NCBI GenBank assembly: GCA_964036045.1
Contig: OZ038378.1
Coordinates: 197,656,001-197,720,000 of the forward strand
Direction of reading: 5' to 3'
Length of the DNA: 64,000 bases
From: Eutreptiella sp. 'Long Island Sound 2002'
Taxonomy: Eukaryota > Protista > Euglenida
The notes below the pieces were generated by a model, which saw nothing but the letters and a program-made list of their open reading frames with translations, did no database searches and was not told where the DNA came from. Positions within the stretch are counted from its first letter, which is position 1, and the number at the start of each line of letters is the position of its first letter. A program made the position numbers and the translations under genes. Shown one piece after another: positions 1-55,289 of this stretch.

Positions 1-2
1 AC

Positions 3-19070: not shown

Positions 19071-19762
19071 CCATGCCAATTTTGCTGTGTTTGGATGAGT
19101 CGCTTTTGTTGTTTCGCTCTGGTGTTGCATTGATTAGTTTCGCTTTTGTAGCGCTTTTGTTTTTCAACTTCATTCACGGATGTGATGCGATGCAAGCTGT
19201 TCCTCCACCCGCAAAACAAACGTATTCAAAAGCGAAAAACAAAAGCGAGATGACTGTCGAAATATCAACAAAACAAAAGGGGCGTTTTCCACCTGTGACA
19301 CGAACAAACAGATTCGAAAGCGAAAAGCGAGACTCAAATGACTTCACAAAAACGACACAGAATGCACGTGTCTTTGCAACAAAACACAACAAAAGACCTT
19401 ACATTCAAGTGCGACGCAAGTGGATTGTTGAGTGGTGATTGCAAGCGTGCAGGTTCATGTTTCCAATGCTGTGTTTGCATTGTTTTCGAATGCTTGTAGA
19501 CTGTCCTTTTTGTTTTCGAGTTCTGTTTTTGTATATTGCAGGTGCTTGTGCGTTCAGTTCACTTGCCGCTGGTTCCACTGCCGGTTCGGCAAACAACAAT
19601 TCCACCGAGGAGTTTTCCAGAGAGCAGCGTGTCTTTCTGCGGGTGTGTGGTCAGTACATGGAAGAAGAATGACAGTGATCCCCACTGTTTGCCTGTCCAC
19701 ACAAGCAGTGTGTCGTGGTTGCTGAGTGGGGACCTCTTTTCAGACGCAGAGTGATCCAGCCA

Positions 19763-20173
19763 GGTTTTTCTGCTCATTTCTTCTGCAATGCAAAGTGCCA
19801 CCCACCTTCCTGTACATTGCTGCAGTGTCTGACAGCCATAGTCATCAACTCCTGGGACATTTGCATCCCATCACATCCGTTCCTGCATTGCATGCTCATT
19901 TTCTGGAGATTTGGCAGTCTGCCCAGTCAGTCCCAAGTTCCAGATTCCTTGCTCAGATTTTGTTCACAGGGAGGTTTTTTCACGGTTTTTCCTGCTCATT
20001 TCTTCTGCAGTGCATTGTGCCACCCACGTGCCTGTGCTGCAGTGTCTGCCAGCCATAGTGATCAACTCCTGAGAACCCTGCATTCAACACATCCGTTCCT
20101 GCATTATATGCTCATTTTTTGCAGCTTTTGCTGTCTGCCCAGTCAGTCCCAACGTTCAGATTCTTTGCTCAGA
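19763..20173 (+). repeat. Diverged ~220-bp tandem duplication
   Basis: CTGCTCATTTCTTCTGCA...CAGCCATAGT..ATCAACTCCTG...GTCTGCCCAGTCAGTCCCAA...TTGCTCAGA occurs twice. Confidence 0.8.
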
Positions 20174-21859: not shown

Positions 21860-22130
21860 ACATCATACTAGGTAGGACAAAAAGTTGAAAAAGTGGTATA
21901 TCATGCTAGGACAGCAAGCTGGCCGTGAAGATTGTGGTGGATCATGCTAGGGCAACAAGTTGAGATAGCGGTGTATCATGCTAGGAGAACAAGTTGCCCC
22001 GCACCATCATGGTGAATCACGCTAGGACAATAAGTTGTCTTGCACCATCATGGTACATCATGCTAGGGCACGCTAGGACAATAAGTTGTCTTGCACCATC
22101 ATGGTACATCATGCTAGGGCAACAAGTTCA
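21860..22130 (+). repeat. Minisatellite of ~7 copies of motif ATCATGCTAGGRCAAYAAGTTG with short variable spacers
   Basis: Motif seen directly; the same array is at ~50520-50795. Confidence 0.8.
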
Positions 22131-22749
22131 CCCCCAAGACTAATTGCCCATGTCATGAGCTAGACTAATTGAACTATAAGAAACATGACCACCCCCCGTC
22201 AACTTTGCTTGTCATCTAGTCCAATAATTCTTTTGACCCTTAGTCCACGCATACGTCAAAGCACAATATACAGTGCACGGCAATCAAGTGACCGTAATCA
22301 CCGTATATGGAGAACTCGGACATCACCAGCTCCACTCCAGACACCAAAGACAGTCGGATCACAGGAGAATGAATCAATCGCGAACGAATCAATGGTGAAC
22401 ATATCTATGGTGGCCAAATCACGAGTGAACGGATCAACCGTGAACAAATCAATAGAGATTGAATCAATGGTGAACAAATCACTCAAACCCACAACACTAC
22501 CTCCTCTCAAAAACCCTCAAAAGAAGGCAAAAGCGGCGAGCAAGCCACCCCGAGGCTACCAAAAGGAGCCATGCCGAGGTAATGGGGCCGGCGGTGGGTA
22601 TGTGTAGTCCTAATAAGGGCATGACACACACATAGAGTCATGCCGCCAACATGAGGTGACTGCTATACTCCCTAGGGAAACACCCCCCCGAATATACACT
22701 GCCCGGCCAATACCAATACCAATACACACACGCGAGCGCGCAGACATAT

Positions 22750-22811
22750 GCACAGACACAGACACAGACATAGACACAGACGCAGACACACACACACACA
22801 CACACACACAC
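22750..22811 (+). repeat. (CAGACA)n/(CA)n microsatellite
   Basis: Seen directly; a second copy is at ~51415-51473. Confidence 0.9.
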
Positions 22812-23350
22812 TACGTGAAGGAGACCAAGAAACCTGAACCCACTGTGGATAGCGGGCAAACAGGGCACTTGTCAAAACAGCTCGTCGGGCCAAAAAAGAA
22901 AAAAGTGTCATCGAGGCTAGGCGCCTTTCTGAGGGACAGCAAGAACGGGGATGGCAGTGTTCTTCCACCTCTGCAGAGTCATATCAGCCCCCTTGTAGTC
23001 TTGTTGCCCCTAGCTCTAAGGAGAGAAGGAAGTTGTATACCTTGCAGCATTGCTTACATGCTCCTAGTCCAGTCATCAAGTGCAACTTCAACCACGGCAG
23101 GACCTCAACCCCAAACTGACACCATTCCAAGGCAAACCAGTTCCATGGGCCCATACCCACACCCTTCAGCCGGACTGCATGCAACCACAGCTGCACACAA
23201 TGTGCAACACACGGGTAAACGCAATGCAGAGATCGATTGGTGGCATATCCCAAACACAAAGCACGTCGGTGACAGCTGACCAATCGGTAACATTTGCCCA
23301 TGTCCACAGCACCAATCCAATATCTCATGCCATACAATCACCACAGAACA

Positions 23351-23520
23351 TGTGTACATAGGTAGATTGCATAGTGCCCGGATATTCATTCGGCCCAGAA
23401 TTTTTGGGGCGGCGACTATCAACATTACCGCATATTCTCTACACTTCACATGCCATGGCATGTTCCTATGGTGGGCAACAATTTCAAGTCTGCCAGTGCG
23501 TCTAGGTAGATTGCATAGTG
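23351..23520 (-). repeat. Solitary inverted monomer of the ~150-bp satellite
   Basis: GTACATAGGTAGATTGCATAGTGC...GGCAACAATTTCAAGTCTGCCAGTGCGTCTAGG. Confidence 0.75.
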
Positions 23521-25837: not shown

Positions 25838-28800
25838 ATGTCTAATGGCGTCGCCAACAAATTGACGGAGGCGGCGCTGCAGGCACAGGAGAAGTTGGAG
25901 CGCCTCTTGTTGAAAAAAAGGATTCGGAATGGGGAAACAAATCAGGTGTTGTGCCTTGTTGCTTGCAGCTTGCCTTGCTTAATTGAACTCTTAGGACATG
26001 GATCTTTGCAAGTTGATAAATCTTTTCATGATTCCTGCAGACTGAATGCGAATGAAGGGACCTTGACGTTGCATAGGAAGCCGTTAGGGAACTATTAGAG
26101 TTCTTCTTTTGGAATGCACAAATTTACATGGCACCCTTTGTCCACGCATTAGCTATGTACCTGAATGCACGTATGTGGGACACGTGGCGGGGTTTGGGGG
26201 GTTCCAATGTTTCAAAGCACTACCATTTTCATTTCAGACAGTACCGAGGGCCACGTCCACGACCAGTGCTGGTGTGTCCATCACCGCGACCAACACAAGC
26301 AACATTGCCGCTGCTGCGCATCAACCGCTTTCACCATCCTCAGCATCTAAACCTAGCCCAAAACCTTGGCCCCATGAAATTGCGCATCCGGCGGAGTTGG
26401 TTCCAGCGCAGGGTACAAGGGATGATGCTCAAGTGCCAAAGGTATGTGTTGGTGTCCATATTGAATTTCATGGAATCAATTTTGAGTTCACGTGTGCAGT
26501 GATTTACCCATTTAGCACAAGTGACAAGGCTTTGCAGCAATCACCGGCATGTCCACGACGAGTCCCGCTACAGCCGCGGCTACCATGCTGATTCGTACTA
26601 CCACCCAACCTGAAGTGCGGTCACTGCAACCAATGTTTAGCTCTGACGCTCATCTCGTGATGTTGCCCTTCCGGCAGAGATGGCTTTGGAGGAGATTAGG
26701 GAGCAGCATCAATGGCCAACGGTGTGTGCTTCATGTTTGCATCCAAATCATGTAGATGCCCTTTTTGAGTCTGGCAATGCTATCACTTCGTGCTTGCACT
26801 CATAGAGGGCACCAACTCATAGCACTCTTTTGTTCTCTTAGTCCACGTCCAGTGCCGGCACTGACACTACGACCGTTGTGGCCACTCCCAACACACTCAA
26901 CATCGGCGCTGCTAGCGTGGGCACCCCCGACACCACCACGCCTCAATTGCCATTGCCAAATTCACGTTCTAAAGCAAGCCCGATGGACGTGGATATGGAG
27001 GAGGCTGCTGAGAATGGAGGGAACGATGTTTTTACCGAGGCTGATGACTTTGCGCTAGTAAGTGCGGCAGACCTTGACCGGTGTATCAATGTTGCGGGGT
27101 CTCATCGGGGATGGCTAAATGCCCAAGTCATCGACTACTATTTGTCTCACTTGAGCTCTGACATTGCTTTTCTTCCTTTGTCAGTGGCCACAATGCTGAA
27201 AAACGGGCCTGAGAAGGTTGCTACCGAGATATTTAGGAAGTCACAATTGCTGGGTAAAAAGATTTTTTTCCCAGTGCACACCGGAAATCATTTTTTTGGT
27301 GTTTTGGTGCTACCCGTTGGACTGGTCATTCATTTGTGTGTTTTCAACTCGGGCCGCGGTGGGGCAGCATTCATCTCTCGGCAAATGTGTGACAAAATCC
27401 AGATGTTTCTAATGGCAAGGAGATCCATTGAGCCGAATGCCCCAACGCTCCATTTTGGTGAAGTCAACATGGTCCCGGTTCGAAAGCAAGATAATAATAG
27501 GGACTGTGGGGTATTTGTATGCTGGTTTGGCAAGCTCCTTGCACATGAACGTTCAGGGATAGTGCCCAAACTGCAAGAATGTCTATTCTCCCATCTTCCC
27601 CTTCGATCAACCGAACTCTTCCCGGATTTCAACCCGACTGCTTTTCGGCAAGAGCTGCATGGGGCCATCTCACGATTTCTGGGACGAAGCTCCACCCGAG
27701 GTACATCCCACGAGAGAAGCCAGTGTAAGCAAGGTGAAGCGGTAGTTGGATATAATGATTTAGTTGAAGCCACACATGCAACCCCACCTGAAGCCACGGC
27801 TTTTGTCCCTGTCCCAACCACAGCCGTAGTGATAGGCTCAGCCCAAGCACCAACGCCGGCCCCATCCCCGGCCCTAGCCCTAGCCACAGACCCAACCACA
27901 ACCCCGGCCCAAGGCGTCCTTTCCGCCACAACCTCCGCCAACGCCCAGACCGCGGTCCCTATACCAGCCCAGGCCACAGCCCATGCCAAATCTACCCGGC
28001 AAGCCACAATCCCAGCCCTTGCCGCAGCCGCATCCCCAGCCCAAGCATCAGCCGGAGCACCAACCGCAACCACAACCACAACCCCAACGCCAACTCCATC
28101 CTTGGCCCCAACCCAAGGATCACCCGTCACCACAATTGTAGCCACACCCCAAGCCCTAACCCCAGCCCCATCCCCACAACCCCCCCGAGCCCTATCCTCC
28201 GAGTCAGCTTCAAGCCCAATTGCGGGAATAACCCTAGCCCCCAACCCAGCCCTGGCCTCAACGCTAGCCCCATGCACAATCACAACGACAACCCCAACCC
28301 TAGCAACCGCCACTACCACAGCCCTAGCCCCATCCTTAGCCCCAACCACAACCGCGGTTCAAGTTCCAGTGCAAGCCCCAACCACAACCCCAACAACAAC
28401 TCCCGGCCCCACCCGAGCCCTGGCCCCGTCCACAATGCCAGCCGCCTCCTTTGCCCCAACCCCAAGTCCATCCGCCGCCATAGCTCCATCCTTAGCCCCA
28501 GCGACAACCATAGCCACAACCGTCAGCGCGGCTCCAGCCCCAGCCCTGGTTGCTATCCCAGCTTCAACCCGGGCCACAACCCTAGCTCTGGCCACACCCC
28601 AAGCCACAACCACAATGCTATCCCCACCCATAATTCTGATTGCAGTCTCGAGTGATAGGGTTAGGGGACTCCAAGATGTGGAGAGTGAATTGGGAACACG
28701 AGCGGACAGTACGGGGAAGGGGACTCAAAATGGGATGGAGGAGGCCTCCCCTGTTGCAGCCCTTTGTGTCGCCGATCAAGTGGCAAGAGGTGTTCTGAAG

Positions 28801-29799
28801 GTAGGTGATAAGGTTCGGGTTCTTTGGGCTACACCATTAGGTCCCAACAAAGATGGCCCAACCGCTATGTATTTTTCCAAGGAGGAAAGGACAAGAAAAT
28901 TTAGTTGGATCTTTGGAAGCGGCAGGCCTGGCGGGGACTTTGTTGAAGGTGTCCCCGTTGGACTCTCTACTATTCCGTGGCCATGTTCAGGGGAATGCAA
29001 GTTGGACATGGTGTTGGTTCGGGGGCTTTTTTTTGTGAGTGCACTTCGACAAATGGAAGGACAACTTGGGCAAGCAAACTCCTCCGGAGAATGGGACACC
29101 ACCATTCGACCTGTCAAGGAGTATTTCAACAACCCTGAGGACGTCATTGCTTTCGAGATGAATGTTCCGAGCGAACGGCTACTGAAACTTGATCGACCCG
29201 ACACTGACCCACTTATGGCGCAGCTTAACCTTGTTGCTTTGGTTGAATACCGGCAAGGTTTTTCCACTGACCTCCTAGCTCGCCATTGGCAAGGCAACCT
29301 CCCTGAGCCTTTGAGCCGCCATGTTGCGCTAACCTTCTTGCGCCGCATATGCATAAACCGCTTCTTGGAGCCGGAAGCACCCGATGCTTGCACTAAGCCT
29401 GCACCAAAGGGTCAGGCCAAGCGAACCGCGCAGGCAAAAGATATGCGAAGAGATGTCCGAGGTACAGGGGGTGCCTTTGATGGGGTGGGCCACTGCCTTG
29501 TTGTCATCGCCCAAGCAACAAGGAGTGAGGGTGGGTTGGAATGGGAGGTTGAGATTCTTGAGGCAGGAGCTGCCACTTCTTCAGTCATTGGACGAGTGTG
29601 CAAGCTCCTTGTCAGCATAGTGCGTAGGGCGGTGCCTGGCGCGAATGTGAAAGTTCAACGATGGACCCAGCCCGACTTCCGACGCCAGGTCCCCACGCCT
29701 TTGAATCCAACAAAAAAGGTCCGACGAGCAGCAGATGGGCAGCCACGTTGTGGCTTCACTGCAAGCAAAATTTTGGGAGCCCTAGCACGGGACGGTTAG
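25838..29799 (+). CDS. Multi-exon Ulp1/C48 (SUMO/Ub-like) protease gene with a Pro/Thr/Ala-rich linker and further C-terminal domains
   Basis: Main exon 26842-29799 (acceptor TTCTCTTAG, in frame): GWLNAQVIDYY, IFFPVHTGNHFF (His), VFNS, RKQDNNRDCGVF (oxyanion Gln, Cys). Putative 5' exons flanked by GT/AG at 25838-25945 and 26678-26721; the exons between them are unresolved. Confidence 0.8.
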
Positions 29800-32199: not shown

Positions 32200-33710
32200 G
32201 TGGAGGTATGGGATGCACTGGTCCACCCCCCGATTGGGAATGGTCGTGAAGTGTGGGAACGGTCGTTGGGAAATGATTTGTTGACGAGGTGAGGAATCAC
32301 CAAGAGTAGCTGCCTCCGGACTTGTGGACCAAATGAACGCACCAAAATGGGGCACCATGTAAGGGACCCAAACACACTAGCGGACTTGAAATTGTTCGCA
32401 ACTTCAGAAACTCGCGTTGGGAATGGAAGCGTTCATGGGTCAAGTGGCACACACACTAGCTGCCTGGCAAATGCTGGACGGAATGCACACCCCACATCTT
32501 CACGCTATGTAACCTACCCAAACACACCATCGGATTTGAAATTCTCGTCAAGTGTAGGATCGTACGTTGGGAAATGAATTGTTGACGTGGTGCGGTATCA
32601 CCTGGAGTAGCTGCCCATACACTTCTGGATAAAATGGTCGCCGAATGCCCGAAATGCCCGACGGAATGGACACACCATAGCTTGGAGCCATGCAATCTAC
32701 TCAAACACAGTGCCGAACTTGAAATTGTCATCAAATGTAGGATTTTGTTTTCGGAAATGAAGTGTTCATGGAGTCAAGTATCACTCACAATATCTGCCCC
32801 TAGAATGCAGGACGGAAAGGACACACCGTACCTTGGAGCCATGCAATCTATCCAAACACACCGCCGGAATCGAAACTGTCCACAAGTGTAGGAGCTTGCG
32901 TTGGGAAATGAAGTGTTGATGGGGTCCAGTAACACCCATAGTAGGTGCCCCGAGAATGGTGGACGGAATGGACACACCATGCCTTAGCGCTATGCAATTT
33001 ACCCAAATCAGCCGCCGGACTTAAAATGGTTATCAAGTGTAGGAACTTGCGTTGGGAAATGAATTGTTGACGGGGTGAGGTATCACCCGCAGTAGACGCC
33101 CCCGGGCTTATGGACGAAATGGACGCTAGAATGCTTGACGCAATGGACATGTCATATCCAGGCGCTATGCAATCTACCCAAACACACCTCCGGACTTGAC
33201 ATTGTCGTCAAGTGTACGAACTTACTTTGGGAAACGAAGTGTTAATGGAGTTAAGTATTAATAGCCATAATAGCCATCTCTTGGCGCTATGAAATGCACC
33301 TAAACACGCCGCCGGACTTGAAATTATCGTCCAGTGTAGGAGCTTGCGTTGGGAAATGAAGTGTTCATCGGGTGAAGTAACACTCATAGTAGCCGCCCCT
33401 AGAATGCCGCACGAAAGGGAGACACCATATCCGGGCAGTGTGGAATCCACCCAAACACGTGAGAGTGAGGCAACACGCATAGTAGCTGCGCACAAACATC
33501 TAGGCTACATGCACCCGCCATATCCGGGCACTACGGAATCTACCCAAATGCAATGACTGCCTTCGCATTGTTTCTCAAGGTACAAACTGAATGTGCAGGG
33601 GATGAGGCAACACTCATAGTGGGTGCCCCCACCATTTTGGACTGCATGCACCCTTTTATGCGGGCAGTGTGCACTAGCACTCAAACTTACGTGGTGACCC
33701 CATAGATGCG
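32200..33710 (+). repeat. Diverged array of the ~150-bp satellite ending just upstream of the SET-RecQ start codon
   Basis: Recurring AAACACACC..CGGACTTGAAATT...GTAGGA..TTGCGTTGGGAAATGAAGTGTT...GTAACACTCATAGTAG. Confidence 0.8.
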
Positions 33711-33767
33711 GGGCAAGCATTGGTTCCTATGTCTTTGTCCTCAGTTGTTTTTTTCCTGCAATTTACC

Positions 33768-35782
33768 ATGAACGGCCACCCTTTGCAAGCCCAATTTGAT
33801 CTTCTGGTTCAAACCAAGTTGCTACCACAGTATGGTACTGTAGCCAAGCAGCTGGTGGTGAAACCCTCCTTGTTGAATGATGCCGGCAATGGGTTGTTCA
33901 CAAACTGCCTCATCAAGAAGAACGAGCTCGCTACCTTTATGGAGGGACGGCTAATAGCCCGTGATGAAGCAATGGAAACCATTAACTCCAAAGGGGACTC
34001 ATCCTACTACCGTACACTAATCAGGTCTCATGTGCCATTGACCCTATGTGCTTCCTCCACCAAGTTTTGTGGGATTTCATCCAATGCTTTTTGCCAATGT
34101 GCTCTACATATTCTGCTGCATTTTGCAACACTCTCAAGTGCATTTGACCACCCAAAGCCGGAAGGCGCTTAAATTGGTACTCCTGACAGTAGTGGGCAAT
34201 TACGTTGTTGGCGCAATGGGAGATCTCGCCGGGGAAAACATCCATGCATGACGTGGAGGGCAATATTTTTATCCCGTCCTTGCATTCGTCCCACATGTTC
34301 CACAGTCAACAATTGGGAATTGATGGTATTCGACAACCGCCTTTGGGCAGGAGTTTTGGCGCAGCATCTTTCGCCAATGATGCCGGCAAATTTTGCAATG
34401 TGAAATTCATTATTAAGGAATTTCATGAAGGATGTCTACCCGTGTGCTTCTTGCAAGCATTGCGAGATATTAAGCCGGCAGAGGAGTTATTTGTCAGTTA
34501 CGGCTCCACCTACTGGGATCGCTCCGAGCACATGGTTACTGTTACAGAGGATCCCAATGGCTTAGTACAATCACACATGGCCCCCAGCCCTCAACCAAAA
34601 GAGACGTCAGAAAATCAGTTGAACAGTCAGCTTGACAGCCACGCAATCAGCGAATCACACAACGAGCCAAGTGATAAGGCAGCCAGCAACATAGACACCC
34701 CTACGAACATACAGCCAGGGGACCACCAAGACGGCCACCCAATTAGCCAATTGGGCAACGCGTTAGGCAGCCGGTCAGCCAACGGACCTACCGACCAGCC
34801 AAACAATCAGGTGGACAGCCATTCACAAAGCCGGATAGATGTTTCGGCCGGTCAGTCCTTGGCGGGTCAAGCACACGGTGAGGACGATGATGACGAGGAT
34901 GATCTTGATGCACAAATTGCAGAAGCTCAGCGCCACTTTGATGCTCTACTTGAGAGGCGCGTGCATCCCTACGATACAAAGATAAAGGTGGAACCTGATT
35001 GCTACGATTCGCAACACATCGACCAGGGACCGGATTGGGGCGCTGAAATTGCGGCGGCGGAGCATGCCCTTGGCAAAGTACTTTATCCGCACCAAAAAAA
35101 GACCTTGCGTGCCCTACTCAACGGCCGTGACGTGCTTTGTGTTTCGGGAACTAACAGTGGCAAGTCACTCCCAGCCCAAATGCTTGCGCACATCACTCGT
35201 AAACCGGTGATTGTTTTTGAGCCTTTGCGAGCAATTATTACCACACAGCTACAGGAATGTGAACGGTTAGGGATTGCGGCGTACAAGTTGGAGGCAAACA
35301 CCCCGTTTCCGAACATCTCCCCGGGTGCAGCTATGGTGTACACCACTCCTGAGAAGGTGTCGTTGTCCAACGACGCCCTAGACAAGTTGGTGGATTTGGA
35401 TCCTGTGGCCTTTGTTGCAGACGAGGCTCACAAGGTCGCCCGAAGTGACAAAACATTTGGGCAGCAATGGACGGAGCTTGGGATTTGCCGACAAAGACTG
35501 CCCACCGTGCCGTGGTACGCATGCACAGCAACGGCCACAACACCTGAGCAACAGGCCATTATCGACCGCCTACACCTTCAAAATGCAGTGAACGTCCGTG
35601 GCATTCTCTACCGAGAAGAAATATCAATGGATTTTCACCACTACGCTCAACCGGTGAAACCTCAAAGACGTCATGCTCCTGAACTTGGTCCTTCCCCTTG
35701 TAAGGGGCAAGACATTGATCTTTTTCACCAACGTCGAAAAGTGCACGAACATGGTCAATATGTTGAAGAAGAAGGGTTTTAA
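33768..35782 (+). CDS. SET domain + acidic linker + RecQ helicase RecA1 lobe (exon 1 33768-34024, intron 34025-34305, exon 2 from 34306), copy B
   Basis: SET-N: VVKPSLLNDAGNGLF..IKKNE..GRLI. SET-C: GIDG..GAASFAND..NVKF..QALRDIKPAEELFVSYGSTYW. A GT..AG phase-2 intron joins them in frame (AG|T = Ser). RecQ motifs: PHQ (0), SGTNSGKS (I), EPLRAIITTQ (Ia), DEAH (II), TATAT (III). Confidence 0.85.
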
Positions 35783-37208
35783 AGTGGCGAGCTTCACTGG
35801 TGCAACACCATCTTCTACCCGTGAGGCCGTCCTTAAGGACTTGGAGCAAGGGCTCATCGATATTGTGTGCTGCACTGCTGCTTTGGAAATGGGTTGGCAT
35901 GTCCCCGGCTTGCGGACACTCATCTTCACCAGTGTGCCATCCTCCATAACGCAGCTGATTCAGCTATTGGGGCGCCTTGCCCGCGGTACGTCAGATTGCG
36001 GGGAGGTTCACATTCTATACCACCAGCACTCCCTGCGTACCCTTGCCAACTGGCACAAAGACAAGGTCAAGGCCCATGCAAATTACCACCTCACCTTGAA
36101 CGACTACACATGTATGTATATGTTGATGCACACCCCAGGTTGCCGGTGGCAGAATTCGTTCCAGCATTCCGACCACGTGCTGTTGGAGCCTTGTGGCACT
36201 CGCTGTGATAACTGCGTGAAGAACAGGCCACCAACAGACGCGGGGTTTGTGCTTGGCCTCTTTCTTCCGGCTTTAGCCTTGTGCGACAAAAGCGACGGCA
36301 TTTGCCTTGGGCACTGCTTAGACCTCATTCAAGGGGTGCGACCCAAAGACCATTACGAGCGATATGGGCAGGAGCTTTGTAATGCTCTCTTTGAGGTGGG
36401 CATTGCTAGCCAGCATGCTTGCGGGAGCAAGGGCTCGAAAGACCAATGGAGGGCTGTCATCATGAAAGGCATGGATTGGGAGTTGGTGAAAGCGATCCCG
36501 AACATCGACAGTGTGACTATGAATTTGAAGCTTGGGGAAGTGGAGTTCAATGACAAAGACTCGTACATCCTACATTTGGAAAAGGCGTTGCCGCAAGCGC
36601 CTCAGAATTTAAGTGAGCATGCTGCAGATGCGCTGGAGGATGCCTACCCGCTTCCTATGACGACTGCTGATGTGAAGCGGCTATTTCGTGGAACCCTTCT
36701 CACTGTAGATGAGGTGCACGCAGCCCAAATCGACCACTTCGCTTGGACTCCAAGGGAAACGCTTCGACTAAAGATTGAAGCTTGCGTGGTGATGCCATCA
36801 AATCCAGAAGTTTGCAACGTGAGCATTGTCGTGAATTCAAGGGGAAGATTGGAGCAAGCAGCGGGGACATGCGGTCTAGTGGCTGAGGACGGCTCTGCTG
36901 CTGGTGGCTACCGTTGCCAGCACTGCTATGCTGTTGCCATGTCCCTCGCACTTGAACAGTGCGAGAAGAAGGTGCCCGGACAACGGCGCACGGTGTTAGA
37001 AGGCCCATCCACCCGAGCTCAGCGCCTACAAGCAAAGCCAAAGCTCCTTCAGCTTCTGGAGAAAAGGGAATATGTGAAGCTTGACAAGCCCATTGATTGT
37101 CCAAAGTGTGACACCTTGTACGTGGCAGAAGATGTGTACGACTTGCCTTATGGGACCGACCGCAAAGGACCAAATCACATGTTTGGGATATTCCTCTCTT
37201 TTGTTTGA
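35658..37208 (+). pseudogene. RecQ RecA2 + RQC + SWIM-like region, copy B; GCM-like and transposase domains deleted at 37160
   Basis: Matches 376-1878, then jumps through a 5-nt filler CGCAA to the equivalent of 8506 (3' UTR), giving a short spurious tail RKGPNHMFGIFLSFV*. Confidence 0.85.
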
Positions 37209-40200
37209 ATGAGAAGGTTGCAACACCTACGACCGCACTTGCATTTGCTGGTCATTGATCACTCCCATGGTCATGGTCAAGGGAAGATAGGTTCCCTCGA
37301 ACCGGTTCCTCTTCCATTTTTCTTCTTCGCCGACTCCTTTGTCCACACATTCAACCTTATTTGTTTTGCCCACATGATTCAATCCACCCATCCCCCCACC
37401 AAGCAATTCATGGGGAGACGGGAGCTGCACTACAAGAGATGACAGAGGTGCATAGCCATAATGTGAGGACTCGCAAGTGCTCACATGTTGTGGACCCCTC
37501 ATGTATGACGTCTGGTCCTTGTCGAACCGTGATTGCCCGCTGTGAGCACTTTCGTCTTCTTTCTCCCCTTGTAGGCCATAGTTTTGCTCCCAACAAGTAC
37601 CTCAATCTCCTCTTGGGGTGTATTTTGTGGCGGGGACTTCCCTGAGTCGTTCCTGACTGATGATAAGGCCACATAATACTCTTGACTGCGCCCACACTTG
37701 TTCCTTGAGCTTGTCTTTCGAGTAGTACCCCCCCCCCTACATCCCACATCTCTCCCCGTTACCGTAGTCATCTATGCAGGCTTGAGTGAACGCTTTGGCA
37801 ACCCCCCCCCCTATTTTCTCTAATTATCGGCCAGTTGGCCCACTCATAGTTCCCCCTTCTATCCCCCCCCCCCCCCACAATGCGGGAAGCCACCCTTAAG
37901 CAGGTTGTTGGATCACAATTTCCCTTCCTTCTACCTTCCCTCTTTTCCCATGTGTCTGGCAGCCCACACACTTGGCAACCCCGTAATTCTTTTGCTAGCC
38001 CCAGGTTGCAGAGATGAGGCAATTGAACGTGTGATGTAGCCAATGTAATTTTGTTTCTTGAACTGTGCATTTTCTGTCCCATACCTCCTTGCCGTCACCT
38101 CCCCATCCACCGTGACCCATGCTTTGGGATGTGGGTGAATCTTTGTATAATTTGGTCAGGGACAGTTTATAGTATGGTGTCGATTTATGTTGAGAAAAAA
38201 CGGTTGCAAAATATTTGCGCGAATGGTGGTGGTTTGGGTTCTACCCATTTCTTCACTCGTGACACAACATTTTTGCACTCTTTGGCCGCGCGCATATTCG
38301 TTCTTATCAAATTTCCACTTATCTTATTATAAGAGCATCTTCAAAGTTATAAACGCCCCCAAGACATATGAGCAATTACAATATTTGCGATGTACCTTGG
38401 AAATGGGGGATGCCCATTTTGTTTTTTCTCATCTTGTGATCTTTGAGTTTGCTCAAGCTTTCATGCTCACAGTATGTCTTCTCCTAGCAAAGGCTGTGAG
38501 TGCAACCTGATGCATTGGCTGTTGTGGAAGTGTGAAAATAGCAAGTTGGCATCTATCCGTATGAGAGGATTCAGCCATATTTTTTAGTGGTGCCTTGTTT
38601 CTTTTGCAAATCACAAGATTGCATATCCGCCCACAACCGTGTCATGAATTCTAGGTTGAACCCTTGAAAATGGCACAATTTTGTGACCAACCCAAGTTAC
38701 GGAGAAGTTTTTTTGTGCATGTGTTTGTTGACATTTGCACTACTTTGTCATTTGATGCCATGGCATGCCACTTAACAACCCTAAACAGTGCAACATGTCT
38801 GCGAAACGGTTCTTCGGTCTCACTGTCCTCTTTAAATACCACCCCCACGCAGTTTATGGCCCACGCGATGCCGGTTCCTAAATTGCAAGAAACACATCAC
38901 GTGGTGCTGCACTGCGGTTGGGAGGGCGACACATGGTCAGCAGACAGCATGCACTTCCGCATTTGAATTCGCGTATTCTCATCCTGCGCCGATGCAGAAC
39001 GAAAGGGTGGGGGCAGAGGAATACAATTCAGCCACAAATTATAGCAAGCCTGAGGCGCCATGAATTGGCGCATGAGTGTGACAGAATAGCACGTCTGTGG
39101 TGACAGCGATAGGTTAACCAGCTACGGTTGCGATGGAACGTTGTGCATATCCCTCAAGTTTGTGGTGCCCCATACCATTGATGTCCTTGGGATTGGCTAC
39201 GTGTCCTTCAGACTGCAACAAATGCTTTGAGGTTTTGCTTTGTTTGTTTGTGGAGAGTTTGTGTCCCAGACCCGTACACACCCTAATACCCAACACATTG
39301 GTGGACTTCAATTTGTTGCCAAGCGCGCGAACCTGCCACGGGAAATGAAGTGTTGATGGGGTGCAGTAACACTCATCGTAGCTGACCCCACTCGTTATCT
39401 AATTCAATAGTTCATTTGACCCTGAATTGCCACACTTGTCATTCCCCAAAATTTTGGGCTGAATGGACCCGCCATATCCGAGCACCATGCAAATTACCAA
39501 AGCACATTAGCAGACTTCAAATTGTTGCCAAGCGTAGGAACCTACTATGGGAAATGAAGTATTGAGGGGGTAAGGTAGAATGAAAAGTGATGGCACGCGG
39601 CAGTGGTATGCAGCAATTGCACCTTGTGGATGCCACATGGACGGCACATCCCGGGGGCCATGCCACTTTTGCTTGCTAGGTTGGGCCATAGTGACGGGCC
39701 CTTCCCTAGTAGCGTTGGTGTGGCTGAAGCATGCCATGGTGCAAGGTGCATTACGAAGGCATGGCACCTATCTTGACAGCGCACGCTCACCGCGAATATG
39801 TGTTTCTTCATGGCAAGACATTACGGAACTGATCGGCATTGTTTGTTTCACATAGTTGCATGATTGGGGAGAGGGCGCCTTGGTGGATGCTTCTCTTTAA
39901 CAGGTTTCAGCCCAACTCTGCGCTCGACCATGCTTAAAACGCCATGAACTTGAAATTAGCGAGCAGTGGACTCAATATGTGCCTATGGACGGTGCCCCAA
40001 AACTACGTCCGTTTTCAGTGCAGTTGCATTGGGAAAGGCCCTCCACACACTCAATGTGTGTGCATGAGCTGGCAACCATCTTCCACAGTTTTCAACCCAC
40101 TGTAGCATGTTGTGGGTCACGTACTCCGCGTGCGGTGCTGCATACAAGTCCATTGGGCATTGCAAAGGGTGGTCTCCAAAGAAGCATGCTCCTTAGTGAA

Positions 40201-43200
40201 ATGAGATCTTTCCCTTTTCTTTGAAAAACCTTTGCTACCCCTCCAATGCAGGAAAACGATGGTGCGCTGCAGCTGTTTCAGAGGAGTTTGCACCACTTTG
40301 TGTAGAGGTAACCCACAGTGTCACGAGAGGCAAAGCCGATATGCCAAATTTTTGTACGTACAGCAAGTACGCACGACTAAAGGACGTCTCGTCACTGCGG
40401 ATGGAGCCCTGGAAGGCTCACCTTGATTGAGAGTGTTTTGACAGCGCTGCCCGCCATGAGCTTCTAGAGCTGACACACTCGATGGCACACAAGTGTGGGG
40501 AACATGTGCGCAATGCATTCCACGCCGTGCATTGCGTGGTTCGTTGTTTCGGGGGGTTGTGTTAGACGTACCGCCTAGAGTAATTTCCTTGCACACCCAT
40601 GAACAGTAAACCTTCATTGTGGTCAAAGCATCACTGCACATTTGGACTTGGTAGCTGGTCCGGATTTCTCCCGTCTACTATCCCTACTTTCACCGCTGCC
40701 CATTTCTTTTCTTTTGTGCAGTGGCAGTCTCCCAAATGAATGGCTTTGTCAAGGTTGGTATGGGCAATGCCTATGAGGAGAAGAGCAAAGTGATGGTAGA
40801 GTGGCCTGGAAAAGGCCTGCCGCCACAAAGACAAGCTGAATGCCGAGAGGATGCAGCACGAGGAGGCAAAGGAGGCCCATTGATGAGCTGCACAAAGCCC
40901 CAGGCCAAGGCCAAGAGGTGCTTGGTGTTGTCAGTGGGATCTTTGAACCACCCACTCCTGAACCCTCCTTTGCCTTGGATAATCTGGTGGTGGTGGACTT
41001 GAAATTGCTGCCAAGCCCAGGAACCCGCCATGGGATAAGAAGTATTGATAGGGTGAGGCTGGTCAGGCCGGTCATGAAGGTCCCCCCACGGGGGGGGGGG
41101 GTAGCACCACATGATTGTAGCATGAAAACCGAACCAATTCCAATATAACCTATTTTCCTTCGGCGCCTTCAAGGACTGGGGGCCTTGTTGTTCTTGGCAC
41201 GGGCAGAATGGGCACTTTTGGGACGGACAACCCACCAGTGTGGTACTGCTTCTATAGCAGAGAATGAGGCGTGGTGGGAAATAGCAGTCCTGTAGTTGAG
41301 GGACACCATTCCCTTACAACCTACTTTACAAATTACCAATCACAACAGCCCCTCATTTCCCCAAACCTTTAACCTAAAACCGCCTGGTACCTGATTAAGT
41401 ACCTAATTAAAATAATACCATCGGAACGGAAGTGTTCGTTGGACCGAGAGGGGGGGGTTCCCGCTTTTTTGTCAAAGTGACAATCCCCCTATAGGGGGGA
41501 TGATGACAAGGGTGGGGGGTAAGTGAGACGTGGGAGGGGCGGGGTGTACTGTGGCAGCAGAGGATGAGTGTAGAATGTCGATACCCGTGCTCATAGGTCC
41601 ATCATTCCAGCCACCCCATTGCTGGCGCTTACACGTTCGGAGGGTGCTCTCCAATACATCTGATGTGCACACTAGGTGAGACGTGAAAGCATGCGGTAAC
41701 ACTCATAGTAGCTACGCGGAAAACTTTGGATTGAGTGAACCCGCTATATGCAGTCACCATTTAATCTACCTAGACACACCGGCGGACTTGAAATTGTTGC
41801 CAAGCGGATGAAGTTGCCATGGGGAGATGAAGTGTGCGGCAACACTCATAGTAGCTGCCCCGAAAACTCCAGGCTAAATGAACCCGCTATATAGGAGGGC
41901 TATGTAGGCTACCTAGAGGCACCGGTGGACTTGAAATTGTTGCCCAGCATAGGAACCCATCATGGGATAAGAAGTGTTGAGAGTGTCAGGTAATACTCAT
42001 AGTAGCTGCCCCCCCTCAAAAAAGTTTCGGGCCGAATGGACCCACCATATCCAAGCACTATGCAACCTACCTATGTACACAAACTAGCGGACTTGAAATT
42101 GTTGCCAAGCATAGGACCCCACCATGGGATAAGCAGTGTTTGGAGTGTGAGGTAACACTCATAGTGGCAGCCCCAAAAATTTGGGACTGAATGGTGCCGC
42201 TATATTCGAGCACTATGCAATCTACCTGTGTGCATTCATTGGCGGCCAAGCATAGGAACCCACCATGGGGAAGGAAGTGTTGAGAGGGTGAGGTAAAACT
42301 CATAGTAGCTGCCCCGAAAACTCTAGGCTGAATGAACCCGCTATATAGGAGGACTATGTAGACTACCTAGACGCACCGGCGGACTTGAAATTGTTGCCCA
42401 GCATAGGAACCCACCATGGGATAAGAAGTGTTGAGAGGGTGAGCTAATACTCATGTAGCCCCCCCCCCCAAAATTTTGGGCTGAACGGAGCCGCCATATC
42501 CATGCGTTATGCAATCTTCCTATGTACACACCTTGGCTCACTTGAAATTGTTACTAGAGAGGGTAAGGTAACACTCACAACAGCTTCCCGAAAAATATTT
42601 GGGCCGAATGGACCCATCATATCCAGGCACTTTGCAAACTACGTGGACGCACTGGAAGACTTGAAACTGGTACCCAGCATAGGAACCAACCATGGGAAAC
42701 GAAGTGTTGAGGGGCTGAGGTAACACTCATGGTAGCCGCCCCACAACTTTGGGGTGAATGGATCCGCCATTTCCAAGCACTATGCAATCTACCTATGTAC
42801 ACACACTAGCAGACTTGAAATTGTTGCCAAGCATAAGAACCCGCCATGGGATAAGAAGTGTTGAGAAGGTGAGGTAACACTCATAGTGCTCCCCCCCCCC
42901 CCCCAAGAAAATCGTGGGCTGAATGGACCGCATCCGAGCACTATGCAATCTACCTATGAAACTTCATTGGCGGACATATCCAGGCACTATGCAAACTACC
43001 TAGACGCACTAGCGGACTTGAAATTGTTCCCAGACATAGGAGCCCACCATGGGACAAGAAGTGTTGTGAGGGTGAGGTAACATTCATAGTGGTGGCCCAA
43101 AAAGAATTGAGGCGAGTGGACCCACCCAGACACACTAGCGGACTTGAAATTGTGGCCAAGCGTATGAACGCACCATGGGAAATGATGTTTTCAAAGGTTG

Positions 43201-46200
43201 AGGTAACACTCATAGTAGCTGCCCCCCCCCCCCCCGCCCAGAAAATTGTGGGCTGAATGGACCGCATCCGAGCACTATGCAATCTACCTATGAAACTTCA
43301 TTGGCGGACATATCCAGGCACTATGCAAACTACCTAGACGCGCTAGCGGACTTGAAATTGTTCCCAGACATAGGAGCCCACCATGGGACAAGAAGTGTTG
43401 TGAGGGTGAGGTAACATTCATAGTGGTAGCCCAAAAGGAATTGAGGCGAGTGGACCCACCTAGACACACTAGCGGACTTGAAATTGTGGCCAAGCGTACG
43501 AACGCACCATGGGAAATGATGTTTTCAAAGGTTGAGGTAACACTCATAGTAGCTGCCCTCAAAAATTGGGGTTGAATGGACCCGCCATATCAAACTGCCA
43601 GTTAATCTAGACACAGCGGCACACTTGAAATTAATGCTAGGCCCGGTAGCCTCATGGAGGTTGAAGCATTGAGAGCGTGCTGTAACACTTACAATAACAC
43701 TCATAGTAGCGACCCCAAAGATTTTGGGGCTTGCGCACCAAACCTCAAATTGACTGGGCTCTGTGCCTTCGTTCATTGGTCTCAAAGTGAAACGGACACT
43801 GCAACGCGCACCACACCGGTCCCCCTCTCCTCCCCAACAAGCAAGCACCCCATGCATATCAGCACTGCTGATGGGTCAACATCCTGCGCTGGGCCACATG
43901 TTCGTTGCCATGTCAGAACTCCTTTCTGATGTGTCTGGGCCATGTTAGGTCAATGCATTGCATGGGGTTATTCGGGTGTGCACTTGCATGCCCCTTTGTT
44001 CAGCTTTCAAGTTAAAAAATGAATTTGAAGTGCAATTCAGAAGTCAAGCTCAATTGAAGTTCAGAATTCAATGAGCATTAGTTGATTTTTTGCAGGTTGT
44101 GCCTGTTTTGTGCTTGTTCTTGTATCATAACGTTCTTTGTACTTTGACGTGTGGTTGCAACAGTGAACTCTGAATGGGTTTGTTCCATTTCGCTGCAATG
44201 CCTTGTTACATTTTAATTGATGTGTCGTTTTGAAAGTTGCTTTTGGTTCTGCCTTTTTTTGTGTTACAGGTTTCGAAGTTGATTTGTGCAAACAAAGGGC
44301 GAATATGCAGGTTGCTGCATGTCAGATGTTTGTCTTATAATTCATCAATGCGCGCTTTTACAGATTTTGCAAATGTTCATTCTTTTGTGTTGCGCTTCCT
44401 CCACTGTGCAGTGTCCGTTTCACTTTGAGACCAATGAACGAAGGCACAGAGCCCTGTATCGGGGCCCTGTACGTGGGCACTGGGCACGTCCCTGGGAATC
44501 TGAAACATGGTTGCTTGTGCCCTTTCCCCTTCTCTTCTGCCTAATTGACGGCTGGGGCAATCAACAACAATGCGTCTAGGGAGATTGAATGGTGGCTAGA
44601 TATGGCAGGCCCATTGAGCCCACAAATTTTTGGTGCAGCTACTATGAGTGTGACCTCATCCTCTCAATACTTCATATCCCAGCATAGGAACCCACCATGA
44701 GACAAGAAGTGTTGAGATGGTAAGGTGACAGTCATAGTGGCCGCCCCAAAAATTTTGGGGCTCGTAGACCCGCCATATCCAAGCACTATGGAATCTACCT
44801 GGATGCACTGGCAGACTTGAAATTGTTGCCAAGCATAGGAACCCACCATGGGATAAGAAGTGTTTTGAGTGTGAGGTAACACCCATAGTGGCAGCCCTAA
44901 AAATTTGGGGCTGAATGGACCCACCATATCCAAGCACCATGCAATCTCCCTAGACGCACTAGTGGATTTGTTGATTGTTGCTCAGCGGAGGATCCTACCA
45001 TGGGATAAGAAGTTTTCAGACCTTAGAGCTTGCGGCAACACCCATAGTAGGTGCCCCAAGAATTTCTGGGCTGAATGAACCCGCTATATCAAGGCACTAT
45101 GCAATGCACCTGGACGCGCTGGCGGACTTGAAATTGTTGCCAAGCATAGGAACCCGCCATGGGGTAAGAAGTGTTGAGATGGTGAGGTAACTATCATAAT
45201 AGGCGCCCCAAAGATTTTTGGGTGAAAGGACCCGCCATATCCAGGCACCAATGCAGTGTACCTAGACATACTGGCGGTCTTGAAATTGTTGCCAAGCCAA
45301 GAAACCTGCCATGGGCAACGATTTCAAGTCCGCTAGTGCATCTAGGTAGATAGCAGAGTGCCTGGATATGGCAGGTTCATCGCCCCAAAATTTTTGGGGT
45401 CGCTACTATGAGTGTTATTGTAAGTGTTACAGCACGCTCTCAATGCTTCAACCTCCATGAGGCTACCGGGCCTAGCATTAATTTCAAGTGTGCCGCTGTG
45501 TCTAGATTAACTGGCAGTTTGATATGGCGGGTCCATTCAACCCCAATTTTTGAGGGCAGCTACTATGAGTGTTACCTCAACCTTTGAAAACATCATTTCC
45601 CATGGTGCGTTCGTACGCTTGGCCACAATTTCAAGTCCGCTAGTGTGTCTAGGTGGGTCCACTCGCCTCAATTTTTTTGGGCTACCACTATGAATGTTAC
45701 CTCACCCTCACAACACTTCTTGTCCCATGGTGGGCTCCTATGTCTGGGAACAATTTCAAGTCCGCTAGGTAGTTTGCATAGTGCCTGGATATGGCAGGTC
45801 CATCGCCCCAGAATTTCTGGGGCGGCTAGTATGAGTGTTACCTTACCTCACCGTCTCAACACTTCTTATCAGGGGGTCCATAAGGGACTATATGTTTCTT
45901 TTGTTAAGGACCGCCCTTGGGGACCACCTGAAGGGACCATCAGCCGCCCACCACAAACCGCTGCCGTCCGCCACTCGCCACCAACCGCCAACCGCCAACG
46001 GCGATCAACCGCCAACCACCAAACACCACCAAACACCATCAACCACCAATCTCCAACCACCAACCGCCACCATCCGCTACCAATCGCCACGAACCGCCGG
46101 TCGCCCACTGCCAACACATGGTGTGCCTGCGCCCGCGGGCTTTTTTGGAAAAGCTGTGTAATGCAGCACTTTTTTCCCCCCCATTAAGGACCACTCTGCT

Positions 46201-49200
46201 TTTTATCCCATGGTGGGTTCCTATGCTTGGCAACGATTTCAAGTATGCCCATGCGTTTTGGTAGATTGCACAGTGCCTGGATATGGCGGGACCATTCAGC
46301 CCAGAGGTTCCGGAGCAGCTACTATGGGTAATGCCCCGCGTTGTCAACCATTCGTTTCCCATGCACTTGGCAACAATTTCAAGTCCGCCAATGAAGTTTC
46401 ATAGGTAGATTGCATAGTGCTCGGATGCGGTCCATTCAGCCCACAATTTTCTGGGGGGGGGGGGGGGGGCAGCTACTATGAGTGTTACCTCACCTTCTCA
46501 ACACTTCTTATCCCATGGCGGGTTCTTATGCTTGGCAACAATTTCAAGTCCGCTAGTGTGTGTACATAGGTAGATTGCATAGTGCTTGGAAATGGCGGAT
46601 CCAGAGGGTAAGGTAACACTCACAGCAGCTGCCCGAAAAATATTTGGGCCGAATGGACCCATCATATCCAGGCACTTTGCAAACTACGTGGGCGCACTGG
46701 CGGACTTGAAGTTGGTACCCAGCATAGGAACCAACCATGGGAAACGAAGTGTTGAAGGGCTGAGGTAACACTCATAGTAGCCGCCCCACAACTTTGGGGT
46801 GAACCTCTCTGGTAACGATTTCAAGTGAGCCAAGGTGTGTACATAGGAAGATTGCATAGTGCATGGATATGGCGGCTCCGTTCAGCCCAAAATTTTTTGG
46901 GGGCAGCTACATGAGTATTAGCTCACCCTCTCAACACTTCTTATCCCATGGTGGGTTCCTATGCTGGGCAACAATTTCAAGTCCGCTGGTGCGTCTAGGT
47001 AGTCTACATAGTCCTCCTATATAGCGGGTTCATTCAGCTTGGAGTTTTCGGGGCAGCTACTATGAGTGTTACCGCACACTTCATCTCCCCATGGCAACTT
47101 CCCCCGCTTGGTAACAATTTCAAGTCCGCCGGTGTGTCTAGGTAGATTAAATGGTGACTGCATATAGCGGGTTCACTCAGTCTAGAGTTTTTGGGGCAGC
47201 TACTCTAAGTGTTAGTGCATGCTTTCAACTTCAACATCCTGTGCTTGGCCACATTTTCAAGTCCGCTAGTGCGTCTAGGTGGGTCCATTCGCCTCAAAAA
47301 TTTTGAGGCAGCTACTATGAGTGTTACCTCACCCTCTCAACACTTCCTTCCCCATGGTGGGTTCCTATGCTTGGCCGCAAGTGAATGTACATAGGTAGAT
47401 TGCATGGTGCTTGGATATGGTGGGTCCATTCAGCCCCAAATTTTTGGGGCTGCCACTATGAGTGTTACCTCACACTCAAAACACTTCTTATCCCATGGTG
47501 GGTTCCTATGCTTGACAACAATTTCAAGTCTGCCAGTGCATCCAGGTATATTCCATAGTGCTTGGATATGGCGGGTCTACGAGCCCCAAAATATTTGGGG
47601 CGGCCACTATGACTGTTACTTTACCATCTCAACACTTCTTGTCTCATGGTGGGTTCCTATGCTGGGCAACGATTTCAAGTCCGCTAGTGCATCTAGGTAG
47701 ATAGCAGAGTGCCTTGATATGGCAGGTCCATCGCCATGCCAATTTTGCTGTGTTTGGATGAGTCGCTTTTGTTGTTTCGCTCTGGTGTTGCATTGATTAG
47801 TTTCGCTTTTGTAGCGCTTTTGTTTTTCAGCTTCATTCACGGATGTGATGCGATGCAAGCTGTTCCTCCACCTGCAAAACAAACGTATTCAAAAGCGAAA
47901 AACAAAAGCGGGATGACTGTCGAAATATCAACAAAACAAAAGGGGCGTTTTCCACCTGTGACACGAACAAACAGATTCGAAAGCGAAAAGCGAGACTCAA
48001 ATGACTTCACAAAAACGACACAGAATGCACGTGTCTTTGCAACAAAACACAACAAAAGACCTTACATTCAAGTGCGACGCAAGTGGATTGTTGAGTGGTG
48101 ATTGCAAGCGTGCAGGTTCATGTTTCCAATGCTGTGTTTGCATTGTTTTCGAATGCTTGTAGACTGTCCTTTTTGTTTTCGAGTTCTGTTTTTGTATATT
48201 GCAGGTGCTTGTGCGTTCAGTTCACTTGCCGCTGGTTCCACTGCCGGTTCGGCAAACAACAATTCCACCGAGGAGTTTTCCAGAGAGCAGCGTGTCTTTC
48301 TGCGGGTGTGTGGTCAGTACATGGAAGAAGAATGACAGTGATCCCCACTGTTTGCCTGTCCACACAAGCAGTGTGTCGTGGTTGCTGAGTGGGGACCTCT
48401 TTTCAGACGCAGAGTGATCCAGCCAGGTTTTTCTGCTCATTTCTTCTGCAATGCAAAGTGCCACCCACCTTCCTGTACATTGCTGCAGTGTCTGACAGCC
48501 ATAGTCATCAACTCCTGGGACATTTGCATCCCATCACATCCGTTCCTGCATTGCATGCTCATTTTCTGGAGATTTGGCAGTCTGCCCAGTCAGTCCCAAG
48601 TTCCAGATTCCTTGCTCAGATTTTGTTCACAGGGAGGTTTTTTCACGGTTTTTCCTGCTCATTTCTTCTGCAGTGCATTGTGCCACCCACGTGCCTGTGC
48701 TGCAGTGTCTGCCAGCCATAGTGATCAGCTCCTGAGAACCCTGCATTCAACACATCCGTTCCTGCATTATATGCTCATTTTTTGCAGCTTTTGCTGTCTG
48801 CCCAGTCAGTCCCAACGTTCAGATTCTTTGCTCAGACTTTGGTTAGAGGCATTATTCGGCGCACAAAGCCGAGTGGTATTGCCTCGTAGAGGTTGTTTTC
48901 AAGCACTACTCAGTGGGTGCACAATTTTGCCCATAATTTCATGCTCTAGTTTTGCTTTTTCCAAATATCTTCAGATGGCGGTCAACATGGATGGACCAAG
49001 GTGCGCACAGGGAGGGATGCTGGTTCGGTATTTGTTTGGCATGTCCAAAAATGGCACCAAAAAAAAGATTACCCCCTGCAGCCCCCCCTCATGCATGTGT
49101 CATGCATTGCATGCATCCCCCCCCCCCCTCCCACCGTTTCTGCCATTTTTGCCTCCAGGCCCTATCAAGGAAAGCTGAATGAATCAACACCGAGAATGAA

Positions 49201-53700: not shown

Positions 53701-53779
53701 TGGAGCAAGTTATCGAGTGTTTCGGAGCCGCCTTAACCAAATAACCGCATGTTTTGCCCAAAAATGGCCAAAAAATGCC

Positions 53780-54345: not shown

Positions 54346-54352
54346 GTCAAAA

Positions 54353-55270: not shown

Positions 55271-55289
55271 GACGTTTTGGCCCGTAAAA

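Follow-up and report, generated by a model that had tools for sequence, protein, structure and literature searches.

RecQ-type helicases have been described in a few DNA transposons with a DDE transposase, namely AcademH, KolobokH and Kolobok-1_CCri (PMC9587614, PMC10045372, PMC3627910); KolobokH is reported from fungi only, and for Academ no CxxH motif is listed (PMC9587614). SET accessory genes have been described in Plavaka, HarbingerS and Helitrons (bioRxiv 10.1101/2025.02.11.637652), and in neither a pan-eukaryote survey of Mutator-like elements (MULEs) from 2019 (PMC6446971) nor an arthropod survey from 2026 (PMC13359780) does the word 'helicase' occur. Here we describe a locus of the euglenid Eutreptiella sp. 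'Long Island Sound 2002', lying in a stretch of 64,000 nucleotides (GenBank assembly GCA_964036045.1, contig OZ038378.1, positions 197,656,001 to 197,720,000 of the forward strand), which is referred to as the window and numbered from its first letter. With a probability which we would put at about 0.72, the gene in this window encodes the transposase of a giant DNA element (>30 kb) that is present in multiple copies, and intact copies encode a protein of ~1,750 residues that joins a SET domain, a RecQ helicase and a Mutator-type transposase. As RecQ helicases are already known in AcademH and KolobokH, the claim of novelty is a narrow one: in the literature searched, with Repbase and Dfam outside that search, no description of a RecQ fusion was found for Mutator elements.

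The element resembles AcademH in pairing a DDE transposase with a RecQ-like superfamily 2 (SF2) helicase, which in AcademH is thought to be active in transposition (Kojima 2020, cited in PMC10045372), but the core here appears to be of the Mutator/IS256 type with a CxxH motif, and a SET domain and a Ulp1 gene are added. A RecQ helicase together with a CxxH-type DDE transposase is also seen in KolobokH and Kolobok-1_CCri (PMC9587614); there, however, the helicase lies downstream or on the other strand, whereas here it is N-terminal within the same open reading frame (ORF), and their target-site duplications (TSDs) are TTAA, unlike the flanks found here. The Mutator-like group (FB-NOF, Ulp1-carrying MULEs and the domesticated FAR1/FHY3/ZSWIM proteins) shares the catalytic fold with its D-D-CxxH-E residues and a core followed by a Cys cluster, and the Cys/His-rich stretch ahead of the core here may correspond to its zinc-finger region; the Ulp1-carrying MULEs also share the protease inside the element, and foldback elements the long arrays of inverted repeat units. 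What differs from this group is the addition of a fused RecQ and a fused SET, and that the classic long terminal inverted repeats (TIRs) and TSDs of 8-11 bp were not found here. A lysine-methyltransferase fold likewise travels with a DNA transposase in SETMAR, HarbingerS and PAG2 of Plavaka (red algae), but SETMAR is a host fusion with mariner, and the SET of Plavaka and HarbingerS is encoded by an accessory gene of its own, in superfamilies other than this one, whereas here it would form the N-terminus of the transposase. In En/Spm (CACTA), from which TnpA and TnpD are made, the first exon can be joined to a large internal ORF or, bypassing that ORF, to exons downstream. The splice past an internal ORF, as tnpA skips the TnpD ORFs, has its likeness at this locus, with the difference that here only the skipping isoform was seen, in one contig, and that the transposase is of another superfamily.

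Self-comparison of the window identified three related copies of a long ORF, named A, B and C, which with their principal parts are as follows:

34306 to 37160, + strand: long ORF of copy B, with the C-terminal half of the putative SET domain, the linker, RecQ, the Zn module and the start of the Cys-rich middle; colinear with the intact protein P0005
from 34877, + strand: acidic linker of copy B, within the long ORF
35665 to 35666, + strand: frameshift site of copy B, a 2-nt deletion relative to the intact locus L001
1 to 2790, + strand: first part of copy A, cut by the window start, with the helicase, the Zn module, the Cys/His-rich middle and the first catalytic Asp
2791 to 6948, no strand: insertion in copy A, made up of 3,587 nt and a repeat of the 571 bp found at 2220 to 2790
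6949 to 8184, + strand: second part of copy A, from D1293 to the stop codon at 8182 to 8184
58819 to 60152, + strand: copy C, a 5'-truncated stump

Copy A at 1-1878 and copy B at 35283-37160 are 99.84% identical, and the same comparison equates A 8506-23350 with B 37166-52012, and A 6851-12027 with C 58819-64000. All three copies are defective. Alignment to the intact L001 revealed a 2-nt deletion common to A (after 383) and B (after 35665); in addition, copy A carries a 4,158-nt insertion absent from L001, with the 571 bp at 2220-2790 recurring at 6378-6948 and so flanking ~3.6 kb, copy B has a 3' deletion which runs from after 37160 up to the equivalent of A 8505, and copy C retains no more than the final ~440 codons. 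The three window copies are dead relics within a cluster of segmental duplications. The inserted sequence at 2791-6377 is strand-biased, with 108 T in 3,587 nt (3%) against 37% C, 32% A and 28% G; a derivation from local sequence by T-to-C conversion was considered and rejected, as no such source is present in the fetched DNA.

An intact copy was found at L001:10001-15067, in another assembly of the same organism (one ENA assembly), where a single uninterrupted ORF encodes the 1,688 aa of P0005. L001 is 99.4% identical to the window, and its ORF corresponds in unbroken order to B 34244-37160, A 1879-2790 and A 6949-8184. A first-pass annotation, made from the window's letters, had joined copies B and A into a single colinear gene; since the intact L001 is colinear without the insertion of copy A, this join was correct, and the intact genomic copies that it called for exist as one gene rather than as separate genes. 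Removing the proposed 281-nt intron at 34025-34305 puts the exon at 33768-34024 in frame with the long ORF and gives 1,753 aa, in agreement with the ~1,750 aa which that annotation had put forward, and the acidic linker, the basic run resembling a nuclear localization signal (NLS) and the C-terminal Cys cluster which it had listed are all present. Clustering of the C-terminal ORF at 90% protein identity gathered 22 ORF fragments on seven contigs of one ENA assembly, and the copies, the intact ORF among them, lie between 96 and 99.8% identity. In most DNA contigs of run X3 an extra AG or GG stands at 35665, so that an intact frame is the usual condition of the gene in this genome.

The assignment of the helicase to the RecQ family of SF2 is solid. 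Pfam reports DEAD (6.7e-15) and Helicase_C (1.7e-17) on P0005, and the best PDB match by phmmer is E. coli RecQ (E 2e-29, over residues 26-452), followed by BLM (1.7e-27), bacterial RecQ, RecQ5, WRN and RecQ1, with RNA helicases twenty orders of magnitude worse. A word-indexed homologue search with the helicase returned generic RecQ/BLM proteins only. Walker A (GTNSGKS) stands at residue 302, the Lys of GKS being encoded at 35162 in copy B, and DEAH at residue 393 (35420 in copy B), whilst a 4-Cys Zn module (C634, C651, C655 and C658, from 36141) falls inside the stretch that aligns to E. coli RecQ. The Pfam family RecQ_Zn_bind is sub-threshold in P0005 (E 0.21), with 0.0026 in the related protein P0021 and 4.2e-5 in the related locus L011. 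RQC and HRDC gave no Pfam hit in P0005, and of the winged helix of E. coli RecQ the first part only was aligned; some RecQ proteins likewise have neither RQC nor HRDC. Of the RecQ helicase with zinc and winged-helix domains which had been annotated previously, the helicase motifs and the 4-Cys module therefore stand, and the winged helix is without an RQC hit.

The remainder of the protein is best followed on copy A, in which these positions were located:

1984 (C1009) to 2245 (H1096), + strand: Cys/His-rich middle, a conserved pattern
2626 to 2628, + strand: first catalytic Asp, D1223, from the alignment to relatives
6994, + strand: D1293, in the second part of copy A
7114 and 7123, + strand: C1333 and H1336, in the second part
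7390, + strand: E1425, in the second part
7603, + strand: basic NLS-like run, in the second part
8062, + strand: Cys cluster, in the second part, after a beta-rich module

From its structural neighbours and its nearly invariant D, D, CxxH and E residues, the modelled core is placed in the Mutator/IS256 superfamily and not in Academ, with no Academ profile among those run. Among 1.84 billion representatives, scanned exhaustively with HMMER, only 60 relatives were found at E <=1e-3. D1223, D1293 and E1425 line up with residues of P0021, and across 53 relatives, D1223 is kept in 37 of the 38 that are informative, D1293 in 48 of 48 and E1425 in 33 of 33; C1333xxH1336 is kept in 42 of 44, and N1422 is nearly invariant in the family. 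The AlphaFold model of the core, built on the alignment of relatives, has a predicted local distance difference test (pLDDT) score above 90, and its best Foldseek match in the PDB is ISCth4 of the IS256 family (8e-5), with structural Z-scores (VIA) of 13.5 for ISCth4, 10.4 for Hermes, 9.7 for the P element and 9.1 for RAG1. Clusters of the AlphaFold DB matched at 1e-14 to 1e-11 are MULE- and GCM-domain proteins. Among the Swiss-Prot models, all of the best 30 are NOF of FB-NOF, ZSWIM1/3/9, FAR1/FRS/FHY3, K. lactis alpha3 or IS256-family transposases, NOF being the best of these, and feature and shape searches of the Atlas led to MULE families. The D-D-CxxH-E MULE core of the earlier annotation is thus borne out, with ISCth4 as the best solved match, and the distinction from Academ that it proposed to check falls, among the profiles and structures compared, on the Mutator side, every named structural neighbour being of Mutator type.

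This placement should nevertheless be considered with some caution, as several results weigh against it and against the zinc modules proposed beside it. Neither Pfam MULE (PF10551) nor Transposase_mut (PF00872) gave a hit at E up to 5, and Pfam MULE was seen in only 3 of the 53 relatives, below the cut-off (best 1.2e-4); Pfam SWIM and GCM gave no hit on P0005; and an AlphaFold model of residues 590-1110, from a 4-row alignment, reached a pLDDT of 27 and was discarded. NCBIfam gave no IS256 hit, and word-indexed homologue searches, run once for the transposase part and once for the C-terminal half, returned the gene itself only.

The middle region is nonetheless a conserved one, with C1009, C1015, C1032, H1034, C1042, H1094 and H1096 invariant across three lineages and, in its SWIM-like stretch, three Cys and one His kept between P0005 and L011. 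Language-model features of this region point to GCM, FAR1, FLYWCH, ALS2CR8 and DBD_Tnp_Mut families with scores <=0.89; as a lead from the sequence, the stretch may resemble the DNA-binding finger of WRKY-GCM1 type which is usual in Mutator transposases. The SWIM-like finger and GCM-like domain named in the earlier annotation are accordingly kept as leads only, with no Pfam or PDB hit and language-model features <0.9. A search of PDB sequences with a profile of the middle region gave one chance hit only, which was dismissed, and a SWIM match after the core was seen in P0021 only, at 18.9 bits vs a cut-off of 19.6. Towards the C-terminus, residues ~1585-1630 of P0005 (window 7870-8007) form a beta-rich module with a pLDDT near 80, before the CxC..CxC cluster; by eye it is like a small chromo/Tudor-like barrel, oddly apt beside a SET domain.

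The order of helicase and transposase is kept in four lineages. P0021, a single ORF of 1,666 aa from metagenome assemblies, is colinear with P0005 over both parts, at 25% identity in the helicase (E 7e-25) and 26% in the transposase (E 6e-30). Within the same assembly as L001, L011 (ctg10901) gives an alignment of 988 aa (E 1e-98) that begins in the C-lobe of the helicase and reaches the catalytic Glu, and it matches both DEAD and RecQ_Zn_bind, whilst L010 (ctg9440) has the C-terminal half of SET, the helicase and the transposase in that order at 49-67% identity; L010 is decayed and partly inverted. As the order recurs in these two further genome lineages and in P0021, the RecQ-transposase can be regarded as a family.

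The long ORF is under purifying selection along its whole length. Between L001 and L002, a copy of 96% identity, the ratio of non-synonymous to synonymous substitution rates (Ka/Ks) is 0.40 over 1,683 codons and 0.31-0.52 within each part of the long ORF, 0.46 being the value for the C-terminal half of SET with the linker; the short first SET exon gave 0.83, on six changes. A rough chi-square against neutrality is ~21, which suggests from the codons that part of the divergence between L001 and L002 arose under selection on a working protein.

The position of the SET domain is less straightforward, and it depends on the following features upstream and downstream of the long ORF:

33745 to 34024, + strand: exon of copy B in which translation would start (ATG at 33768), encoding the first half of SET, from the RNA contig of run X1 and PDB phmmer
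34025 to 34305, + strand: proposed intron splitting SET, 281 nt, GT..AG, from reading of the sequence
48205 to 48232 (19542 in copy A), + strand: start of a downstream exon, from the X1 contig, preceded by a pyrimidine tract and tgcag

The two halves of SET were searched separately. With the N-terminal half, 16 of 17 PDB phmmer hits were to SET7/9, aligned at the start of the SET domain. The C-terminal half hits SUV420H in the PDB and reaches Pfam SET at E 0.006 (17.3 bits vs a cut-off of 22.4), over the C-terminal 26 positions only, and a profile of this half from two lineages gave SET/PR proteins for all 24 of its PDB hits, each weak (E 0.3-1.7). The half also contains EELFVSYG, with the tyrosine of ELxxxY, and the cofactor motif FAND, which aligns to FINH of SUV420H2. 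Taken together the assignment to the SET fold is weak but consistent, and we regard it as credible. The SET domain of the first-pass annotation is thus partly upheld: both halves match SET proteins, but Pfam stays below its threshold and the N-H of the cofactor motif is altered.

The RNA runs that hold the locus are tiny, the evidence consisting of one 327-nt contig from the 4-Mb run X1. This contig covers 33744-34026, with its non-matching ends at an AG and a GT site, and its loose end matches exactly at 48205; its 18-nt 5' end (GAGTGTCTATTTCTTTTC) is missing from the window and from the 23 fetched loci (379 kb). On the strength of this contig, the SET exon is a real spliced exon with a used donor. 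Of the single transcript that the earlier annotation proposed to look for, the RNA shows the splicing of the SET exon, which in the sole contig continues at 48205, past the ORF.

It could be argued from this that the protein starts at the ATG at 34244, that the SET exon belongs to another spliced product, that the C-terminal half of SET is a relic and that there is no SET-RecQ-transposase polypeptide. The sole RNA contig, in which a canonical GT..AG splice of ~14 kb from 34024 to 48205 skips the helicase-transposase ORF, is the main point on that side and tells against a fused SET, as do the change of N-H to N-D in FAND and the lack of RNA coverage of the helicase-transposase ORF in the tiny runs, in which no read supports a splice from 34024 to 34306; the sub-threshold Pfam score and the lack of any SET seen in P0021 or L011 point the same way. 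However, the C-terminal half of SET is in frame with the helicase, both FAND and EELFVSYG are kept in the lineage of 63% identity, L010, and the GT..AG intron which restores the frame is kept in diverged copies, with its donor and acceptor present in both L001 and L002. The Ka/Ks of the C-terminal half with its linker would also be unexpected of a relic, and one short contig leaves room for a rarer isoform. Separate products are, for these reasons, the unlikelier account, albeit one with a real share of the probability, and SET is probably part of the same polypeptide as the RecQ-transposase, as judged from the reading frame and its conservation.

The gene sits in a multi-copy unit of >30 kb, of which the following features were recognised:

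26878 to 29799, + strand: ORF for a Ulp1-type C48 cysteine protease (Peptidase_C48 E 7.4e-6, 26.4 bits vs 20.7)
23351 to 23520, + strand: ~170-nt repeat unit, the first of its kind from the left edge of B's unit, from unit matches
13094 to 14830 (- strand), 16650 to 19048 (+ strand) and 32988 to 33546 (- strand): arrays of the ~170-nt unit, in inverted blocks
22230 to 22256, also 50892 to 50918, + strand: recurrent 3' junction (...TTAGTCCACGCATAYGT), with varied flanks
22257 to 23350, no strand: spacer X, 1,094 nt, between units A and B; repeated after B at 50919 to 52012

The Ulp1 ORF lies upstream of the transposase gene, on the same strand and in the same unit. It is of 973 aa with a long Ala/Thr/Pro-rich linker, and its reading frame is not the same in the window as in L001, so that each copy may be frameshifted. 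The 18-nt core of the ~170-nt unit, TAGGTAGATTGCATAGTG, occurs 51 times vs 0.02 expected, and the arms of the inverted blocks are up to 99% complementary. After the 3' junction, each of five contigs (the window and four others) continues with a different, unrelated flank; three of the five flanks begin CATCC, and the starts recorded are CATC, TACT and CAAA. Besides two occurrences in the window, spacer X follows two more units in ctg9616; its 207-aa ORF has no Pfam match. The region between unit B and copy C (52013-58818) contains tandem repeats with periods of about 185 and 198 nt, as well as a block with a G+C content of 74%. Elsewhere, the flank of another copy, at L016:10237-10366, carries a long terminal repeat (LTR) retrotransposon pol ORF of 1,615 aa (RVT_1, RNase H, rve).

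A second alternative is that the locus is no longer a transposon, but a domesticated or decaying gene family spread by segmental and tandem duplication, with the 30-kb unit immobile. The window is indeed a cluster of duplications of a unit followed by X, the order unit-X-unit-X being found again in ctg9616, and copy number alone is thus no proof of transposition; A and B share the same frameshift; and the 3' junction recurs without a TSD or TIR. The ends were looked for in the copies, as the first-pass annotation had proposed, and the outcome counts against mobility: in L001 the gene is not bordered by inverted repeats, the 3' terminal 22-mer has no inverted counterpart in the 379 kb of fetched loci, and the recurrent junction shows no TSD. 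The left edge at 23351 is not a true end either, as other copies continue upstream; it was tried as the 5' end and rejected, ctg9051 and ctg9616 sharing further upstream units and a 181-nt satellite. This satellite forms an array of at least 4 kb that adjoins the element in two different contigs (L003/ctg9051 1-4118 and L004:1-1567), followed by an array of a ~20-nt repeat. Duplication of an immobile unit would, however, have to account for the same 3' junction before five unrelated flanks on five contigs, for copies that are 96 to 99.8% identical with one ORF intact, for a Ulp1 cargo and subterminal repeat arrays which are typical of large DNA transposons, and for the coexistence of several divergent lineages, and we consider it improbable. 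That the core is instead of Academ or Kolobok type, which would make the element a member of AcademH or KolobokH, is very improbable: RecQ has been described in both superfamilies in the sources cited above, and the comparison was made without Repbase profiles, but every named structural neighbour is of Mutator/IS256 type, the helicase lies upstream of the transposase here and downstream in KolobokH, and the flanks of the 3' junction are not TTAA.

A giant transposon encoding a SET-RecQ-Mutator protein is therefore the reading that we retain. We suggest more tentatively, at somewhat worse than even odds, that it represents an undescribed Mutator lineage in which RecQ is permanently fused, with SET in one branch, and which forms foldback-like giant elements of at least 30 kb, with Ulp1 and with En/Spm-like splicing that usually skips the ORF. 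In such a protein the modules would follow one another as SET (with its short intron), an acidic linker, RecQ with its 4-Cys Zn module, the Cys/His-rich stretch and the DDE core, and then the basic NLS-like run and the small beta-rich module with its Cys cluster. The zinc modules may bind the arrayed ~170-nt repeat units with their 18-nt core motif, and the DDE core would cut and join the DNA, whilst the tethered RecQ motor could unwind or branch-migrate the ends of so long an element, which are prone to repeats and hairpins, or, alternatively, guide how the donor gap is repaired. Provided that it is spliced in and active, the SET module might mark local chromatin or the protein itself.

If the built-in SET is real, this would be, to our knowledge and in the literature searched, with Repbase and Dfam outside that search, the first known Mutator transposase with a chromatin writer of its own. 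Helicases now stand beside three DDE superfamilies, Academ, Kolobok and, here, Mutator, which argues that the pairing of a helicase with a DDE enzyme has arisen repeatedly as a solution rather than by accident. As this family unites the two in a single chain and has an intact ORF that could be expressed, it would make it possible to test directly what the RecQ motor contributes to cut-and-paste transposition, be it the opening of long repeat-rich ends, the resolution of hairpins or the repair of the donor site.

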